A stretch of DNA of 63,364 bases, the filler included, from Octopus bimaculoides (taxonomy: Eukaryota), in NCBI RefSeq assembly GCF_001194135.2. It is 4 parts of 3 records of this genome, joined end to end, with 100 filler letters (N's around TTAATTAATTAA, not from the genome) between each part and the next. Parts side by side here need not be neighbours in the genome. Positions count along the whole stretch, not along the records: positions 22,585 to 32,075 come from NC_068991.1; 3 more parts are not named here. The stretch is one strand, 5' to 3'. This document shows, piece after piece, positions 22,585 to 32,075 of the stretch. The first letter of the stretch is position 1, and every line of letters begins with the position of its first letter. A model generated the notes under the pieces. It had not been told where the DNA came from and ran no database searches. It saw only the letters and a list, made by a program, of their open reading frames with translations. The position numbers were made by a program, and so were the translations under genes.

Positions 22585-23209
22585 CTCTATAATGTAAAAA
22601 GTCGGATTTCCTGTAGCAACTTGGTCTTTTCCCCGCTACTAAAAGACATGAAGAACTATGAAAGAATGCGAATAAGTACCGGAGGTGGAGGAAAGAAGGG
22701 AGAACTAACACTTGATCGTTCTAGAACTCCCAGAAAAAAACACCTAAATACCTGAAATATTTTCCCTCTATTCATTACTAAATGTCTTTCTCTCTTCATT
22801 GATGCCATGAGAAATGTTTGTGTATTGTGACAGTTACATAATATAGAAAGAAGTGTAAAACCGATAAGTATATAATCCAACTAAAATGTCACAGTTACGC
22901 AAACGTAAACTGAATTAGTATTTAACCTCAAAATACGTTGTACATATTATAAGAACACTCTTGGTTTAGTGGCACGGAAAGTTCTTCTGGTAGTCTTTTA
23001 CTTGTTTCAGTAATTTGACGGTGGTCAAGCTGGAGCACCGCCCTTTAGTCGAAGAAATCGACTCCTGGACTTATTCTCTGTAAACCTGGTGCTTAATCAA
23101 TCGGCCTTTTCTGCCTAACAGCTAAGTTCCGAGGACGCAAACAGACCAACATCGGTTGTCAAACATTGGTGTGGGAGGGACAAATATAGACACACACACA
23201 TGTACGTAC
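22585..23209. repeat. Diverged paralogue of the UGT downstream region (26265-27135), blocks in permuted order
   Basis: 22800-23205 matches 26265-26665; 22637-22790 matches 26985-27135; 22586-22625 matches 26738-26775. Roughly 85-90% identical by eye. Confidence 0.85.
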
Positions 23210-23917
23210 NNNNNNNNNNNNNNNNNNNNNNNNNNNNNNNNNNNNNNNNNNNNNNNNNNNNNNNNNNNNNNNNNNNNNNNNNNNNNNNNNNNNNNNNNNN
23301 NNNNNNNNNNNNNNNNNNNNNNNNNNNNNNNNNNNNNNNNNNNNNNNNNNNNNNNNNNNNNNNNNNNNNNNNNNNNNNNNNNNNNNNNNNNNNNNNNNNN
23401 NNNNNNNNNNNNNNNNNNNNNNNNNNNNNNNNNNNNNNNNNNNNNNNNNNNNNNNNNNNNNNNNNNNNNNNNNNNNNNNNNNNNNNNNNNNNNNNNNNNN
23501 NNNNNNNNNNNNNNNNNNNNNNNNNNNNNNNNNNNNNNNNNNNNNNNNNNNNNNNNNNNNNNNNNNNNNNNNNNNNNNNNNNNNNNNNNNNNNNNNNNNN
23601 NNNNNNNNNNNNNNNNNNNNNNNNNNNNNNNNNNNNNNNNNNNNNNNNNNNNNNNNNNNNNNNNNNNNNNNNNNNNNNNNNNNNNNNNNNNNNNNNNNNN
23701 NNNNNNNNNNNNNNNNNNNNNNNNNNNNNNNNNNNNNNNNNNNNNNNNNNNNNNNNNNNNNNNNNNNNNNNNNNNNNNNNNNNNNNNNNNNNNNNNNNNN
23801 NNNNNNNNNNNNNNNNNNNNNNNNNNNNNNNNNNNNNNNNNNNNNNNNNNNNNNNNNNNNNNNNNNNNNNNNNNNNNNNNNNNNNNNNNNNNNNNNNNNN
23901 NNNNNNNNNNNNNNNNT

Positions 23918-24187
23918 TATACTAAATAAAGAACTCACGAAAACTTTCCAAAAGGAACAGAACATAAATATCCTTCCAATGAATGAGATACCAGAAATTG
24001 AAGAAATTCGCAGTGCTTCAGAGAAGCAAGAATGTAGAAGAGTATTCGTGATGAAAAAGGCCCTAAATTTATTCCCTCCAGTGTGCGAGAGAATTCTAAG
24101 GGATGAAAAATCGATTGAAATGATGAGAGCAGTGAATGCTAGTTTAGCTGTTATTAATGGATTATTTGTGACAAACTGTCTTACAAT
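23918..24187 (+). repeat. 270-bp exact direct repeat, copy 1 (copy 2 at 31806-32075)
   Basis: No differences seen on base-by-base reading. Offset is 7888 bp. Both copies abut N gaps. Confidence 0.95.
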
Positions 24188-25265
24188 AATTGCTTATAAA
24201 TTGTCAATTCCGTTTGTTCTGACAGGATCTGAGATACTTCCTAGTCTTCATCGTATTCCATGGAACCCCAGTATTTTTCCAAACAGCTTCCTGTCATCCT
24301 CCGATAAAATGACATATTCAGAAAAGTTAATAAGTACTTTGGTTGCTATTGTAGACTACACTATTCTTTCTATTGGAGCACCTACACACAGTGTCAAAAC
24401 ATATGCGAAAGACAAACCTGATATTTCATTCATAGATTTGCTACACCAGGCACAGTTTTTTCTTATTGAAAAAGATGTACTTCTAGATTATCCGCTGCCC
24501 CAACTTCCAAATGTAAGATATGTTGGTGGCCTGGCAGCAAAACATTCATTGCCTTTGAAGGGAGGGTTATTGAATTTCGTAAATGCTTCCACGAATGGAA
24601 TAGTTGTGGTGTCATTTGGCAGTAATATCAATGATTTCCCTGCTGTTCAGCTAGAAAAGCTACAGAGCGCATTGAAACAAATAAAATATGATGTTGTGTG
24701 GAGACAGAAGAAAACATCATTTTCTCATAAGAATATTTATATCAGTGATTGGGTACCACAAAATGATCTGCTTGGCCATCCTAAAACTAAATTATTTGTT
24801 ACTCATTGTGGAAATAGCGGTCAATTTGAAGCTTTGTTCCATGGTGTGCCAATGCTGGGAATACCTTTATTTACAGACCAATTTTATAACTCTCGCAGAA
24901 TGACCGAGAAAGGATACGGATTGTCACTAGATATAGAGAACTTTACCCCGAAGGAATTAATAGAGAAAATAAAAGAACTGATTGAAAATAAAACATATTC
25001 TGAGAAAATTAAAAGAGCTAGTGAAATATTCCACTCCCGACCCGAATATCCATCGAAGAAATCAGCCCGCCATATTGATCACATCTTGAAATACGGTGGA
25101 GAATATCTAAAGTCTCCATGTCAAGAGAGTCGATTGTATGAATTTTTCATGATCGATGTATTGGCTCCTATATTTGTAGTAATATCACTTTTGATATATT
25201 TGACCTGTCTAATTGGGAAAAAATGTTTAACTATCTTTTGTAAGAAGAAAACGAAGACTGACTAA
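23919..25265 (+). CDS. UDP-glycosyltransferase (GT1, metazoan ER-type), 5'-truncated by gap; residues ~58-505, intronless
   Basis: UGT signature WVPQNDLLGHPKTKLFVTHCGNSGQFEALFHGVPMLGIPLFTDQ, GIVVVSFGS motif, C-terminal TM helix, and KKTKTD end fitting a KxKxx ER-retrieval signal. Frame is open from the contig start. Confidence 0.96.
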   Translation: MLNKELTKTFQKEQNINILPMNEIPEIEEIRSASEKQECRRVFVMKKALNLFPPVCERILRDEKSIEMMRAVNASLAVINGLFVTNCLTIIAYKLSIPFVLTGSEILPSLHRIPWNPSIFPNSFLSSSDKMTYSEKLISTLVAIVDYTILSIGAPTHSVKTYAKDKPDISFIDLLHQAQFFLIEKDVLLDYPLPQLPNVRYVGGLAAKHSLPLKGGLLNFVNASTNGIVVVSFGSNINDFPAVQLEKLQSALKQIKYDVVWRQKKTSFSHKNIYISDWVPQNDLLGHPKTKLFVTHCGNSGQFEALFHGVPMLGIPLFTDQFYNSRRMTEKGYGLSLDIENFTPKELIEKIKELIENKTYSEKIKRASEIFHSRPEYPSKKSARHIDHILKYGGEYLKSPCQESRLYEFFMIDVLAPIFVVISLLIYLTCLIGKKCLTIFCKKKTKTD

Positions 25266-25564
25266 ATTATGTTTCGGTAAGCTCAAATATGTAAATCATA
25301 CCTCTTTTGTTTTGCTTTATGTAAATCAAGATCTAACTGCAATAACCCTGAAAGCATAATTTTGTTTTCGTATAGAAATTTTAATTTGCATCGTAATTTA
25401 TCTTCAGCTTTTGTAAACCAACACCCGCTGATTGTTTTTATATGTAATTTTCCCAGATAAAGTGACATTGTATATCCAGTGTCCAACGGACTCCCATCCT
25501 GATGATATATAGAAAAATAACGCAGCCTAATGCAGCCGTTTGTCTTATGTAATGAACATACATA

Positions 25565-25764
25565 AGAGTGACAGAGAGGTGGCTGTGAAAATACTTAGAA
25601 TAAACTTACATCATCAGTGAATTGTAAAAGCTGTGAAAAATTAGTAAATTAATGAAACAGTTACGTACCTATATAACTGTTTACTAATTTTTTCGCAGCC
25701 TTTACAATTCATTGATAAAATAAGTTTATTCTAAATATTTGCACAGCCACCTCCCTGTCACTCT
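25565..25764. mobile_element. Foldback MITE-like element 3' of the UGT stop codon
   Basis: TA|AGAGTGACAG...CTGTCACTCT|TA with ~90-100 nt arms that pair almost to the centre. Confidence 0.75.
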
Positions 25765-28700
25765 TATAATTAAAAATCAGAAATATTAGTCTCATTTGTC
25801 CAAGAATCAAATCAGAATCATTGTCCTTTTCCCCTTTATCTAACGTCTAATTTCACTTCACATCGTTAACATTTGAATTCTGTTTGCATTCTCATATCTG
25901 GTACTAGTTGGAAAACTTGACAGCTACTACGAGACCCAAGGATTAAATTGTGCGCTTCTATCTGTTTTGGCATTGTTTCCTAACGTAAATGCCCTTCCTA
26001 AATACAAAACCTTTGCAGTGTGTACTGGTTGCTTTTTTTGTGCCACGTGCACTAGTGAGATGAAAATGCAGCTGGAAAATGATAACCCGAAGAGAGGCGG
26101 ATTTTATGCTAAAAGATGAGAAGTGAAAGTAAGACGAAAGGAGGCAGAACAGAACAGGTTTCTTGATGTAGTATGAGCACATGACAATTCATATTTTACT
26201 AGCTGGACACGTGAAAATTTCACGGTAAACATAAAAAATATAAGCATCTGTAAATTGATTTCTGGTGCCGTGAGAAATGTTTGTGTATTGTAACAGTTAC
26301 AGAATATAGAAAGAAGTGTAAAACCGATAACTTTATAATCCAACCAAAATACCTCAGTTACTCAAACGTAAACTGAATTACTATTTAGTCTCAAAATGCA
26401 TTGTACATATTAAAAGAACATTCTTGGTTTAGTGCCACGGAACGTTCTTCTGGTAGTCTTTTACTTGTTTCAATAACTTGTCGGTGGTCAAGCTGGAGCA
26501 CCGCCGTTTAGTCGAAGAAATCGACTCCTGCACTTATCTCCTGTAAACCTGGTGATTAATCTATCGGCCTTTTCTGCCTAACAGCTAAGTTCCGAGGACG
26601 CAAACACACCAACATCGGTTGTCAAACAATGGTGTGGGAGAGACAAATATAGACACACACAAACACACATACACACGCACATACATACCTATCAGTTTTC
26701 GTCTACCAAATTCACTCACGAGGCTACAGTAGAAGACACTATAATGTAAAAAGTTGAATTTTCTGTAGCCACCTGTTGGCAACTTTTCTCCCCCATCTAT
26801 TTTGTAGGGGGTGTTACTCAATTTTCTGCGATTTTTTCACAACTATACCACGTTCGAAATTTGCATTAGTTTTTGTATGAAAAATAATAAAGGAAATTAG
26901 TGAGGGGTGCTCGTTTGTATTTGGTAGAGAAAACATTAAACGTGCCTTAAAAAAAATAAAAATAAAAAAAACAACTTCTTCGAAACTAAAAGACATGAAG
27001 AACTATGAAAGAATGCGAATAAATACCGGGGGTGGAGGAAAGAAGGGAGAACTAACACTTGATCGTTCTAGAACTCTCAGAATAAAAACCTAAATACCTT
27101 AAATATTTTCTCCTCTATTCGTTACTAAATGTCTTTCACTTTTTCTTCGTTGTTAAAAGTAAAATTGCTAGAAAAGATCGTCTGAATTTCAGTCTAATTG
27201 TCATTTTAAATGACTGAGGCTTTCCTTTCCCTGACTCTATCCCTTCAATGCTTTCTTCTACGGTTAAGAGTGTGATGGTGAGTGGTTCAGTGGTTAAGGA
27301 TATTCGGCCCACAATCGTAAGGTCATGAGTACGATCCTCGGCGGCGCGCCGTGTTCTTGTGCAAGTCACCCTACATCACCTTGCTGCAGTTCACACGACT
27401 GGCGAGAATGAGTTGTTGCTGTAATTCAAAGGTGTCAGCCATGGCACATTCTGCGTGAAGCTGAATCTCCCTGAGAACAATGTAAATGGTATGCATATCT
27501 GTGGAGTACTCAGTCATTTGTGCGTTAATTTTACGAGCAGACTGTTCTGCTGATCAGATAAACAGGAACCTCGTCGTCGTAACCGACGGAGTGCCAGTTT
27601 TGAAAAAGATTGAGAAAGGAAATGTTTCATATCGTAAGGCAAAAACGTCATGTGTTTAGTATAAACAGTGAAAGCTACGACGAAATAATTGCTATTCCGT
27701 CGTGTATTCGCCCTCGGCTCACGCTCAGTTTGATACCAATAGCCAGCGCATCGGTGTTTAACTGGGGGCTTGGCCTCCAGATCTGTGAGACCCACAAATA
27801 TCGCTGTTAGGACCGGATTAATACCCATAGTGACCCTAACGACTTAAAAGATGTTCCTACCTCTATATAGGATCTTGTTTCGTTTTCTTTGAAACACTTG
27901 AAGGTTTATCTTACTAGATAGCCACTCAGCTAGCCAAAATGAGTTGTAGCTGTAATTGAAAGGGGTCAATATTGACACATTCTGTGTGAGGCTGATTCAC
28001 CTTGACAACTACGTTAATGATATGCATGTCTGTGGAGTACTCAGCCATTTCCGAATTAAATTTATCCTCGTGAAAGTGACGTCCAATATTTGCAGCGTCT
28101 ACGTATCTATGTATCAACTTTCTTTTCCATCTATGTATCTACTGTCTCTCTCACTTTCTCTCTTTTTCTTTCATTTCATCTGTGTCCTTCCTCTCTCCCG
28201 CTTTTAATTTAACAATGTGTTTATGTATCTATGTATCAACTTTTGTTTCGATCTATGTATGTACTTTTCTTGCGATGTGATAAACATTTAAAAATACAAA
28301 ACGAAAGCCGTCACCTCTCACTCCCTCTCTTTCTCTCTTACTCTCTCTTTCTCTCTCACTCTCACTTTCTCTATCACTCTCTATTTCTCTTTCACTCTCT
28401 CTCCTCTCTCACTCTCTCCGTCACCACTCACTGTCTCTTTCACTCTATTTCTCCTTCTCACTCTCTCTCTTTCTCACTTCCTCTCTGAAACATTTAAAAA
28501 CACAAAACGAACGCCGTCAGCACTCACTGTCTCTATCACTCTCTCTCTTTATCTCTCTCACTCTCCATTTTTCACTCTTTCTTTCTTACTTCCTCTGTCC
28601 TCCTCTTTTTTGCTTTGCCACTGATTTCTTCCTTTGAAGTAAATGTGACACACACCGCAGGTAAGGAAAGAAACAACTACAACTAAGCGCATTATTATTA

Positions 28701-29279
28701 TTGATAAGATTGGGTGGAGGTGATCGGGTGGAGCGGAGAAGAGATAAAATAGTGGTGATGGGTTGCCCGTGTCTTCTTTCAAAGTAAAAGGTGAGTAAAA
28801 GTGAATGGAAGCAGCAGAACGGTAGATCTAGCAAAAGTGAATGGGAGAATGAGTAATGAGAAGGAAGGGAGTGACTATAATGAAAGAAGAAACGTTGAGT
28901 GTTCATAAAAGGGTGGAAGAAATTGGGAAGCGTGGTGAATGCTGTAGTAAATGGTGGATAAAGGGTGAGGGTGACCAATTATGCATGGCGGTGGGGAGGG
29001 GAAGAGCAGCAGAACAGTAATATTGGTTCGGTATACAAGGTAAGGAAGCGAGAAAGAGAGAGAAAGTTAGAGAGAGAAAGGCGGTTAGAGAAAGTGATGA
29101 TTTGACAGGTTGTAAGAGTGTAGGGAAAGGGGAGAGAGAGGCAGCTGGAGGGCATGGGGTGGCTAAGAAGGAGAAATTAAAAATTGCTTTGCTATTCATT
29201 ACTGAGTTGGATAGTCACGTATGGGGTTTGATATCTAATGCAACACCACATGTGATTAAGTGAAAGGTAATTGAAAAAT

Positions 29280-30360
29280 CCACACTTATTTTAATGGACC
29301 AAATAAATGTAAAATATGTTCAGCTGAAAGAACTCAGCTCCTTTTCAGATCCAAGATCCCTAACTCATCACTGAACTCTAGGTCTGAAATTTTCAGGGGT
29401 TGTAAACATATGTCTAAGTACGTTTTGAAGAATTGAAAAATTCCACCTATATCTGATCAACTTGTTGTTATCTTTCCAGCCTTATAAAACATTTCATTAT
29501 AATGCCCCAGCTGCAGCATCATGTCTCATCGGTAGATGATACCGTGATGAAATTTTCAGACAACTGCTTATGATGTCGGTGATATCTTTGGTGTTAATTC
29601 CACAAAGTCTGCATCGGTTGTCACATTTTACTGCTTTTCTTGCACCTCTATCCCTTTTGTGCATCGGGAACTTGGTTGATGTTCCTTTTCCTTGATTGCA
29701 AACGCATTCCCTTCAAAGTGGAAAGTAGTAATCGTGCTATTGGTCCATGATAGACTGCTTTGATGATTAATGTTACTGTCATCTTGGAGCTATCTACTAG
29801 TATATCCATGCATGGTTTTCTGCTTATACAGGCTCATCCTTTCATATGATGATATGTTGCGGTAGAGTCGTGCGACATATTTGGTCATGTATTCTAGGTT
29901 ATGACAGAGCGTTGCTCGATGAGCTACCTTCCATCTCTTATGATGTTATCAACCTCATGTATGCAAACTTGATCAAGGGATGCAGTTCGACACTTTGTGA
30001 TTAAAGGATGTTGCCGAAGGGATATGATACAACAGTCAAATGTATTTTGGATCAATGTTAAGCCTCTGCCGCCTTGTTTTCATTTTTGGAAGAGGTGGTC
30101 TACGTCACTATTTATGTGGAAATGATTTGTGCTTGTCAGTATTTTTCGGGTTTTGACATCAATGGCTCAGATCTCATCAAGTGTCCAATCAAGCTGCCAA
30201 AATATGGGTATGAGTACTAGCACTGCAAACACATTGTGGGCCAATGTTTCATTGAATGCAAAGAGTTCTGACGTCCAAATTTTCTTTATTGGGCTGTAAT
30301 ATTCTTTAGTGACAGGTGTTTTGTTACAGGTGTCATTGTAAGATATGTTTTCATTCACCC
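29280..30360 (-). mobile_element. Degenerate RLE-type (R4/R2/NeSL-like) non-LTR retrotransposon
   Basis: Minus strand 29690-29510 reads DNRCRLCGINTKDITDIISSCLKISSRYHLPMRHD, a decayed CCHC knuckle plus RHD motif. Outer limits approximate. Confidence 0.7.
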
Positions 30361-30810
30361 CTAGAAACCTATAACATTATTTGTCAGATATATGGGACAC
30401 AGTCAATCATTGATGGAGTAGTTGCTAGTGTGGTTTATAGTTTTCCCTCTTTTCCCAACAACCATATAACAACATAATTTATGTAAACCGAAAAGAAGAG
30501 TAGCAATATTCAGACGAGCTTGTGTTAAAACGAAAAACATAATGCCGAAAATTGGTAAAATGAAATCCAAGAACAAAGTGAATTAAAGTAAAAAAGAAAA
30601 AGAGAAGAAACGAAGAATTACTAAAAAGAGACAGAAATGTTATTTTGACGTAAAATAATAGATGTTGAAAATTGTATGTATGTATGTATGTATATATGTA
30701 TGTATGTATATACATACATACACCCCCCACATATATGTATATAATTACATATGCATATATACTAACGTATATATGCGTATGTATGTATGTATGTATGTAT
30801 GTGTGTATGT

Positions 30811-31142
30811 GAAGGCACATGGCTCAGTGGTTAGAGCGTCGAGTTTACGATCGTGAGGTTGTGAGTTCGAATCCCGGACCGAGCTGCGTGTTGTGTTCTT
30901 GAGCAAGACACTTTATTTCACGTTGCTCTATTTCACTGAACTGTAGAAATGAGTCGCGACGTCACAGGTACCAAGCTGTATCAGCATTTGCCTTTCCCTT
31001 GGATAACATTGGTGGCTTGGATAGGGGAGACCGGTATGTATGGGTGACTGCTAGTCTTCCATAAACACCCTTGCCTGGACCTGTGCCCGGGTGGGTAACT
31101 TTCTAGGTGCAATTCCATGGTCAGTCATGACCGAAGGGAATC
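30811..31142 (+). mobile_element. SINE family 3 with intact Pol III A and B boxes
   Basis: A box TGGCTCAGTGG at 30820 and B box GTTCGAATC at 30865. Relatives at ~27280-27600, 38770-39090(-) and 40715-41090. Confidence 0.85.
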
Positions 31143-31198
31143 TCAGCATGTATGTATGTATGTATGTATGTATGTATGTATGTATGTATGTATGTATG

Positions 31199-31229
<31 letters not shown>

Positions 31230-31589
31230 TTATCTAATGTACACATTTACGTATATCAATGTATATATGCACACGCATGCATCTATGTATGAGGTTTGTA
31301 TATATTTATGCTTCTGTATTTGTACAGAAATATGGTTCTATTAATTCTATGGATATATTAATTAGTACTAAGGTAGTTATGTGCTTTGTTGCTGTTTAAA
31401 AGATATGCATAAACCATTTCTAATAAAGCTCTAAATAGTTTGGTTAGTGTATCGAAGTTACTATACAAATTTGCTACCATAATTTTGGCATTGTGGTGAC
31501 GGATGAGGTGAGACAGTCATAAGACACAAGTTGCTTTCCTTCCATCGCAAATATCATTCGAATATATAATCACAAATTTATTCATATGT

Positions 31590-31617
31590 CTTTCTATATC
31601 TTTTCTCTTTTTTTTAG
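31590..31617 (+). promoter_or_regulatory. Polypyrimidine tract and AG splice acceptor of a 5'-UTR intron of the UGT
   Basis: ctttctatatcttttctcttttttttag|gtcaac lies 18 nt upstream of the ATG. Confidence 0.6.
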
Positions 31618-31635
31618 GTCAACACCTCCTGAAAA

Positions 31636-32075
31636 ATGATAGAGAAGAATCTGTTTTTCTGTTTAATGGTGCTATGCATCATTGTACGTCTAGAAAGAGT
31701 CAACAGTAAAAATATTTTATACATAGCATGGCCTGCTTACAGTTATGTATATCCAATGATTTCTATAGCAAACGAATTATCAAAGTATGGACATAATAAC
31801 TATTTTATACTAAATAAAGAACTCACGAAAACTTTCCAAAAGGAACAGAACATAAATATCCTTCCAATGAATGAGATACCAGAAATTGAAGAAATTCGCA
31901 GTGCTTCAGAGAAGCAAGAATGTAGAAGAGTATTCGTGATGAAAAAGGCCCTAAATTTATTCCCTCCAGTGTGCGAGAGAATTCTAAGGGATGAAAAATC
32001 GATTGAAATGATGAGAGCAGTGAATGCTAGTTTAGCTGTTATTAATGGATTATTTGTGACAAACTGTCTTACAAT
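31636..32075 (+). CDS. UDP-glycosyltransferase N-terminus (signal peptide, residues 1-146), 3'-truncated by gap
   Basis: MIEKNLFFCLMVLCIIVRLERVNS signal-like peptide followed by NILYIAWPAYSYVYPMISIANELSKYGH, the UGT N-terminal strand/helix. 31806-32075 is identical to 23918-24187. Confidence 0.93.

Follow-up and report, generated by a model that had tools for sequence, protein, structure and literature searches.

An octopus UDP-glycosyltransferase copy with Tyr and Asn at the catalytic His-Asp positions: a subfamily-wide and a private substitution

A UDP-glycosyltransferase (UGT) gene copy of Octopus bimaculoides has Tyr at position 37 and Asn at position 137, the two places that hold the catalytic His-Asp dyad of glycosyltransferase family 1 (GT1). 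The gene adds to a known family a member with an unusual active site, and its sequence puts it in a subfamily of ER-membrane UGTs that is specific to octopods and tandemly duplicated. The two substitutions have separate histories: Asn137 is spread across the subfamily, and Tyr37 occurs in this copy alone. On firmer ground, and more general, is the result for the subfamily, which has retained Asn137 under purifying selection from before the Octopus-Argonauta divergence and is a candidate animal example of His-only catalysis. The Tyr37 copy is best explained as a young paralogue, disabled or made strongly hypomorphic only recently and with its frame still open, in an array that evolves by birth and death, a reading given about even confidence.

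Locus and array architecture

The window is the whole stretch of DNA analysed, 63,364 nt including filler, and the piece of it considered here (22585-32075) is a 100% match to O. bimaculoides chromosome CM046611.1 (GCA_001194135.2) at about 29.065-29.075 Mb, where intronless UGT genes form a tandem array with many gaps. The piece is made up of a 625-nt contig (22585-23209), a gap of 707 N (23210-23916) and an 8,159-nt contig (23917-32075); its end is also a contig end, and 2,900 N follow in the chromosome assembly (L001 18098-20997). The long contig opens within one UGT coding sequence and closes within another. Since the same 271 nt stand at its start and at its end, the tandem unit measures 7,888 bp and exists in at least two near-identical copies. 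Such near-identical units were possibly collapsed or broken by the short-read assembler. The features are as follows.

23210..23916, no strand: 707-N assembly gap, which conceals the leader and the first 57 codons of copy 1
23917..24187, plus strand: 271-nt stretch identical to 31805-32075, found at both ends of the long contig
23919..25265, plus strand: copy 1, an open reading frame (ORF) with codons 58-505 and the stop codon of the same or a near-identical UGT
24156..24158, plus strand: codon 137 of copy 1, AAT (Asn), within the 271-nt identity
24750..24881, plus strand: intact UDP-sugar donor signature, residues 335-378 (alignment with UGT2B crystal structures and alignment A1)
25152..25262, plus strand: C-terminal transmembrane (TM) helix (about residues 469-498) and cytosolic tail KTKTD (model helix 469-498 and sequence)
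31596..31617, plus strand: polypyrimidine tract with AG (31616-31617), 18 nt before the ATG (leader alignment A2)
31636..32075, plus strand: copy 2, the first 146 codons of a UGT coding sequence (signal peptide, first strands and helices of the N-domain), cut at the contig end
31744..31746, plus strand: codon 37, TAT (Tyr), at the catalytic His position in the motif AWPAYSYVYPM
32044..32046, plus strand: codon 137 of copy 2, AAT (Asn), at the catalytic Asp position in the motif ASLAVING

Copy 2 has its ATG at 31636 and matches L001 17658-18097 at 100%. In copy 1 the reading frame is already open at the gap edge (23917), the coding sequence runs to 25262 and the stop codon occupies 25263-25265; the corresponding NCBI product is a protein of 428 aa, begun at the internal Met78 (23979). 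The 505-aa protein, which the first-pass annotation treated as a single joined product, takes codons 1-146 from copy 2 and codons 58-505 from copy 1 by way of the 271-base overlap. As a reconstruction of the repeat unit this join is reasonable, but it combines two gene copies, with 359 codons unseen in copy 2 and 57 in copy 1. No continuous molecule is therefore seen to carry Y37 together with the elements that the first-pass annotation called intact: the UDP-sugar signature, the TM helix and the KxKxx ER motif are seen on copy 1, the Tyr codon on copy 2.

The coding sequence of the subfamily is a single exon. Upstream of it, the leader and its AG are conserved in the paralogues, in O. sinensis and in O. 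vulgaris (alignment A2). The AG at 31616-31617 is a likely splice acceptor, through which an exon of the 5'-UTR would be joined to this coding exon. Past the 2,900-N gap (L001 20998-21287), a leader 94% identical to 31535-31622 is fused to the last 68 UGT codons, a fragment that arose either by deletion or by misassembly. In the UniProt model A0A0L8H0D0 (P0186), copy 2 appears to be spliced across the gap to such a C-terminal segment. The NCBI models XP_014776558.1 and XP_014776554.1 (P0001, P0125) also appear chimeric (L002 3456-3902, L001 2941-4047 and copy 1 of the window): their N-terminus matches one copy, their middle part matches the adjacent 338-aa fragment and their C-terminus is identical to copy 1.

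The intergenic DNA is rich in repeats. Two dispersed repeat pairs, one of 300 nt at 90% and one of 168 nt at 85% identity, link 22629-23099 with 26263-27143, and a 79-nt inverted repeat (89% complementary, with a 48-nt loop) lies about 300 nt past the stop codon (25562-25767). Further along are a CT-rich microsatellite with a strong strand skew (28315-28486) and (TGTA)n tracts upstream of copy 2 (30673-30810 and 31148-31233). A tRNA scan of the piece 22585-32075 found none.

Residues 37 and 137 in the UGT fold

The joined protein matches the Pfam family PF00201 (UDPGT) over residues 88-502 with 250.7 bits against a cut-off of 19.5 (E 3.9e-74). Its AlphaFold2 model (pLDDT 89.7, pTM 0.86) has a GT-B fold with two Rossmann-like domains, and the top Foldseek matches in the PDB are all GT1 structures, namely TuUGT202A2 (E 1e-20), UGT51 and OleD. 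The C-domain aligns with the crystal structures of UGT2B17, 2B15, 2B7 and 2B10 at E values from 4e-38 to 2e-32. The columns of the donor signature (pattern W..Q..LL.HP...F.TH.G..S..E...G.P....P...DQ), which is seen on copy 1 only, are nearly invariant in A1, a MAFFT alignment of 39 sequences from cephalopods, gastropods, a nemertean, fishes, frogs and mammals. At codon 354 (24807-24809) the signature reads THCG in place of the vertebrate THGG; this Cys is common to nearly all molluscan relatives in the alignment, and Gly is found in vertebrates and in one Haliotis sequence. The signal peptide, placed by sequence at the hydrophobic residues 2-22, is encoded on copy 2, and the TM helix and tail on copy 1. 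The KTKTD tail has the KxKxx pattern of a putative dilysine ER-retrieval motif.

Codon 37 (31744-31746) and the Asn codon of ASLAVING (32044-32046) read TAT and AAT, as the first-pass annotation described them. Within 31700-31800, TAT and CAT at codon 37 are told apart by the strings TACAGTTATGTATAT and TACAGTCATGTA. Although that annotation had relied on a manual alignment, its assignment of both residues to the canonical dyad agrees with A1, with a wider alignment of 213 sequences (the query and 212 related UGTs) and with a GT1 profile. In A1, Y37 shares its column with H35 of mammalian UGT2-type sequences (YSHW, FSHW, MSHW), and N137 shares its column with D150-D154 of the same sequences (FADA, LADA, IIDP). 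When the N-domain profile is set against the solved Bacillus GT1 enzymes YojK, YjiC and UGT109A1, the same columns hold a Gly-His and the Asp at a strand end. Tyr37 thus stands in the column of the GT1 catalytic His, and Asn137 in that of the dyad Asp, which closes the fourth strand of the N-domain.

Helix 35-49, which follows strand 26-30 in the AlphaFold2 model, has Y37 near its beginning, and strand 133-137 ends in N137. The three-dimensional placement combines secondary-structure position with the profile alignment to solved GT1 sequences, and on the model both residues are at the canonical GT-B locations of His and Asp. Displacement of the dyad by another His or Asp sliding into the catalytic columns was considered and ruled out, as Tyr and Asn occupy these columns in the 39- and 213-sequence MAFFT alignments and in the HMM alignments. 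Two other His residues, H53 and H167, are conserved in the relatives whatever the state of their dyad and are therefore not specific substitutes; H167 is a possible alternative base.

Asn137 in the octopod subfamily and dyad variants in other UGTs

The arrays were read as DNA from three gap-riddled O. bimaculoides loci, a gapless 25 kb of O. sinensis (with three intact copies, a truncated one in inverted orientation, and fragments), a gapless 21 kb of O. vulgaris (two intact copies and one frameshifted) and one Argonauta copy. Protein identity to the query is 93% for the adjacent O. bimaculoides fragment P0123 (over 369 residues) and 87% and 83% for further paralogues of this species, the 87% belonging to XP_014776559.2 (P0002, annotated as 'UDP-glucuronosyltransferase 2A3'), about 17 kb upstream. 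The O. sinensis and O. vulgaris copies reach 83-85% and the Argonauta hians gene 66%. P0002 and the relatives in these three species share with the query the single exon of 505 codons, the leader with its acceptor, the signal peptide, the donor signature, the TM helix, the KxKxx tail and the Asn at the Asp position. They differ from it in retaining the His, where the query has TAT together with about ten further changes at sites that are invariant among them.

Every other copy that covers position 37 encodes His by CAC or CAT (three in O. bimaculoides, four in O. sinensis, three in O. vulgaris and one in Argonauta). Position 137 is Asn in every subfamily copy examined in the four species except Osin_c and Ovul_b, which have Ser. 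This Ser (AGT versus AAT) is confined to one orthologous pair, at L004 14915-16429 in O. sinensis and L005 9770-11284 in O. vulgaris. The other cephalopod UGT clades in A1 have Asp at this position. Because Asn and His occur together throughout the four species, the Asp-to-Asn change is placed at the base of the octopod subfamily, before the Octopus-Argonauta split. Pairwise dN/dS within the subfamily is 0.18-0.43, with 0.24-0.43 inside Octopus and 0.18 against Argonauta at a dS of 1.25.

Low dN/dS combined with a kept His points to working His-only enzymes, not dead ones, and by analogy with known GT1 enzymes the subfamily members that carry His and Asn are probably His-only transferases. The alternation of Asn and Ser at 137 would fit a position without a remaining catalytic role. 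A reading of N137 itself as a sign of decay was ruled out, the residue being clade-wide and accompanied by low dN/dS. The suggestion of an amplified pseudoenzyme runs together two changes that differ widely in age: it is the subfamily bearing the His that is amplified, and Tyr replaces this His in the present copy alone.

According to a review of plant GT1 enzymes, O-glycosylation is abolished or strongly lowered when Ala or Asn is put in place of either dyad residue; AtUGT89C1 and ZmUGT706F8, which have no Asp by nature, are reported to rely on the His as their sole base, and N- and S-glycosylation can proceed by spontaneous deprotonation (PMC10641439). These two plant proteins have the same His-positive, Asp-negative state as the octopod relatives, but they are soluble and distant members of GT1, and the query is also without the His.

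Non-canonical dyads are not confined to octopods. In the 213-sequence alignment, the His column holds a residue in 193 sequences (H 161, Y 10, R 9 and others 13, hence non-His in 32/193) and the Asp column in 209 (D 164, N 17, E 13, S 5 and others 10, hence non-Asp in 45/209). The Tyr/Asn pair is unique to the octopus copy, and about 12 other sequences lack both residues, including named proteins of Physella acuta and Lingula anatina; several of them lie on contigs whose length, about 2 kb, suggests transcripts. Lophotrochozoan UGT expansions have thus lost the dyad repeatedly, and its loss does not automatically mean loss of function. Departure from the dyad in these lineages may point to a reservoir of non-canonical UGT chemistry that is still unexplored.

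In further lineages the His column contains R, V, L, F, A, Q or N. Heterobranch gastropods (P0029-P0033, P0037, P0054 and P0150) have Ser-Tyr in place of Ser-His (Ser-Phe in P0032), followed by the pattern SYxxxH, whose His may be a relocated catalytic residue. These UGTs, among them the 'UGT 1A9-like' protein of Physella acuta and proteins of Candidula unifasciata and Biomphalaria glabrata, resemble the query in the Ser-Tyr of this column and are full-length with intact signatures. They differ from it in being conserved across species, in keeping Asp or Glu at the second position and in having a His four residues downstream, none of which applies to the query, and identity to it is about 36%.

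An expansion of cephalopod UGTs is known from the Sepia genome, with expression in skin, retina and brain (PMC13218726). A literature search returned nothing specific on the catalytic residues of mollusc or cephalopod UGTs or on UGT pseudoenzymes.

Tyr37 and the fate of the copy

Tyr37 was found in no other copy in the four species examined, so that the dyad-less state is conserved in neither orthologues nor paralogues. The first-pass annotation had noted that TAT is one transition away from CAT, and the nearest paralogue, P0002, indeed has CAT, a single C-to-T step from the query. The 146 and 448 visible codons contain no stops or frameshifts, and the ATG and the leader acceptor are conserved. 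Parsimony assigns 12 nonsynonymous and 9 synonymous changes to the terminal branch, an omega of about 0.4 that is similar to the family background. Compared with a neutral expectation of about 16:5 (one-sided binomial p = 0.044, on a short branch that is partly older than H37Y), this ratio indicates that some constraint acted on the branch, though it may predate H37Y. The proposed dN/dS check therefore gives a value away from 1, though with so small a sample and so recent a change it does not tell decay from new function.

The placement of the changes leans the opposite way to their number. Eleven of the 21 residues unique to the query fall at sites that are invariant in eight other full-length copies, Argonauta included; they include H37Y, W122S, L126M, V176I, P207L, P208S, E273G, K276N and A436S. 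Unique residues arise at equal rates at invariant and variable sites (0.040 vs 0.045). The corresponding shares are 4/16 in P0002, 4/33 in P0004 and 10/30 in Osin_a, or 18/79 when pooled, and the query differs from the pooled value (Fisher p = 0.014) with no single comparator significant. Number and placement combined look like relaxed constraint on a young duplicate, for which they are modest evidence. Two residues from Y37, in the helix of the acceptor site, the copy has a further Tyr (N39Y) that is specific to it within Octopus and is also found in Argonauta; this change could equally reflect remodelling of the acceptor pocket.

The array shows birth-and-death dynamics, and the favoured reading places the copy within them. 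The Asp that normally polarises the His was replaced by Asn in the octopod subfamily before Octopus and Argonauta diverged, and the members kept their His, stayed under purifying selection and most likely work as His-only transferases. In one young O. bimaculoides duplicate, the CAT-to-TAT transition would then have taken out the remaining general base. On chemical grounds, a Tyr beside an Asn should be a poor general base. As H37Y removes the only base left, transfer to hydroxyl acceptors is expected to be lost or greatly reduced. The predicted product would fold, insert into the ER membrane and probably bind UDP-sugar, but most or all deprotonation of ordinary hydroxyl acceptors would be gone. 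If the gene is merely a freshly disabled duplicate, as seems most likely, it offers an ordinary snapshot of birth and death in a detoxification gene cluster.

A different fate would be that of a neofunctionalised enzyme, which transfers sugar to nucleophiles that need no catalytic base (amines, thiols, carboxylates or acidic phenols) in a pocket reshaped by Tyr37 and Tyr39. The proximity of N39Y to H37Y would suit such a change, as would the intact donor signature, TM helix and leader and the terminal omega of about 0.4. Tyr is also the second commonest residue in the His column (10/193), and Ser-Tyr recurs in gastropod lineages; these Tyr-type UGTs, however, combine SYxxxH with Asp or Glu, and the octopus copy has neither. 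Many of its unique changes affect conserved sites distant from the pocket, and no orthologue or paralogue carries Y37.

Two human enzymes, UGT1A4 and UGT2B10, were invoked by the first-pass annotation as a parallel, and in these the His is replaced by Pro or Leu, not by Tyr. Like the query they are ER-membrane UGTs of the same Pfam family, with the canonical His naturally replaced, and they are conserved, characterised N-glucuronidating enzymes that are not orthologous to the octopod subfamily. The parallel is a loose one: it holds for the loss of the His and fails for the Asp, which the human enzymes keep (D150 in UGT2B10; PMC8781437) and the query has exchanged for Asn, so that it has lost both residues. 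Dyad-independent N- and S-glycosylation in GT1 (PMC10641439) also speaks for a new enzyme, which is on balance unlikely. Were the Tyr/Asn copy active, it would be a natural test of how much an animal UGT needs the His-Asp relay for GT1 catalysis, and it could point to classes of acceptor (such as amines, thiols or pigment precursors) that bear on the UGT expansion in cephalopods. It is doubtful that a dyad-less UGT, arisen inside a cephalopod subfamily presumed to run on His alone, is expressed and kept in the octopus, whether as a base-independent conjugating enzyme or as a non-catalytic binder of UDP-sugar or another ligand.

Slightly less probable again is that TAT reflects a base-call or consensus error, a heterozygous haplotype, or a variant of a collapsed unit, in which case no full-length gene would unite Y37 with an intact C-terminal half. 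The locus is a short-read assembly riddled with gaps, and the 271 nt shared by the contig ends are a sign of repeat collapse. As the short-read contigs recur in the chromosome-level assembly, that assembly is no independent check of the TAT codon. The joined 505-aa protein is absent from a collection of 15 billion proteins in both its Y37 and its Y37H version, and the only contig with the 428-aa ORF comes from the same O. bimaculoides assembly. When the 146-residue N-terminus was used in a word-indexed search, the old model P0186 (A0A0L8H0D0) was the sole match; like XP_014776558.1, this model appears to be a chimera across gaps. Against an artefact, single-base consensus errors are rare in deep short-read assemblies. 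In addition, the surrounding 440 nt contain several further copy-specific differences, which argues for a distinct paralogue sequence and not a stray read.

A selected pseudoenzyme, which would bind UDP-sugar or a lipophilic ligand or modulate active UGT partners by hetero-oligomerisation in the ER membrane (a behaviour established for mammalian UGTs), is very improbable, for although the dyad is gone while fold, donor site and membrane anchor are intact and the terminal branch has an omega under 1, no other copy or species conserves the dead state, the change is too recent to demonstrate selection, and the excess of changes at conserved sites argues for relaxation.

Disabled copies of several kinds were observed in the arrays and document their birth-and-death dynamics, to which the leader fused to the last 68 codons also testifies. 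P0004 has a premature stop that truncates the TM helix (L003 10001-11437), the frameshifted O. vulgaris copy has a scrambled C-terminus (L005 16365-17803), the truncated inverted copy of O. sinensis lies on the minus strand (L004 17640-18578), and a degenerate N-terminal fragment with stop codons is found at L001 5135-5485.
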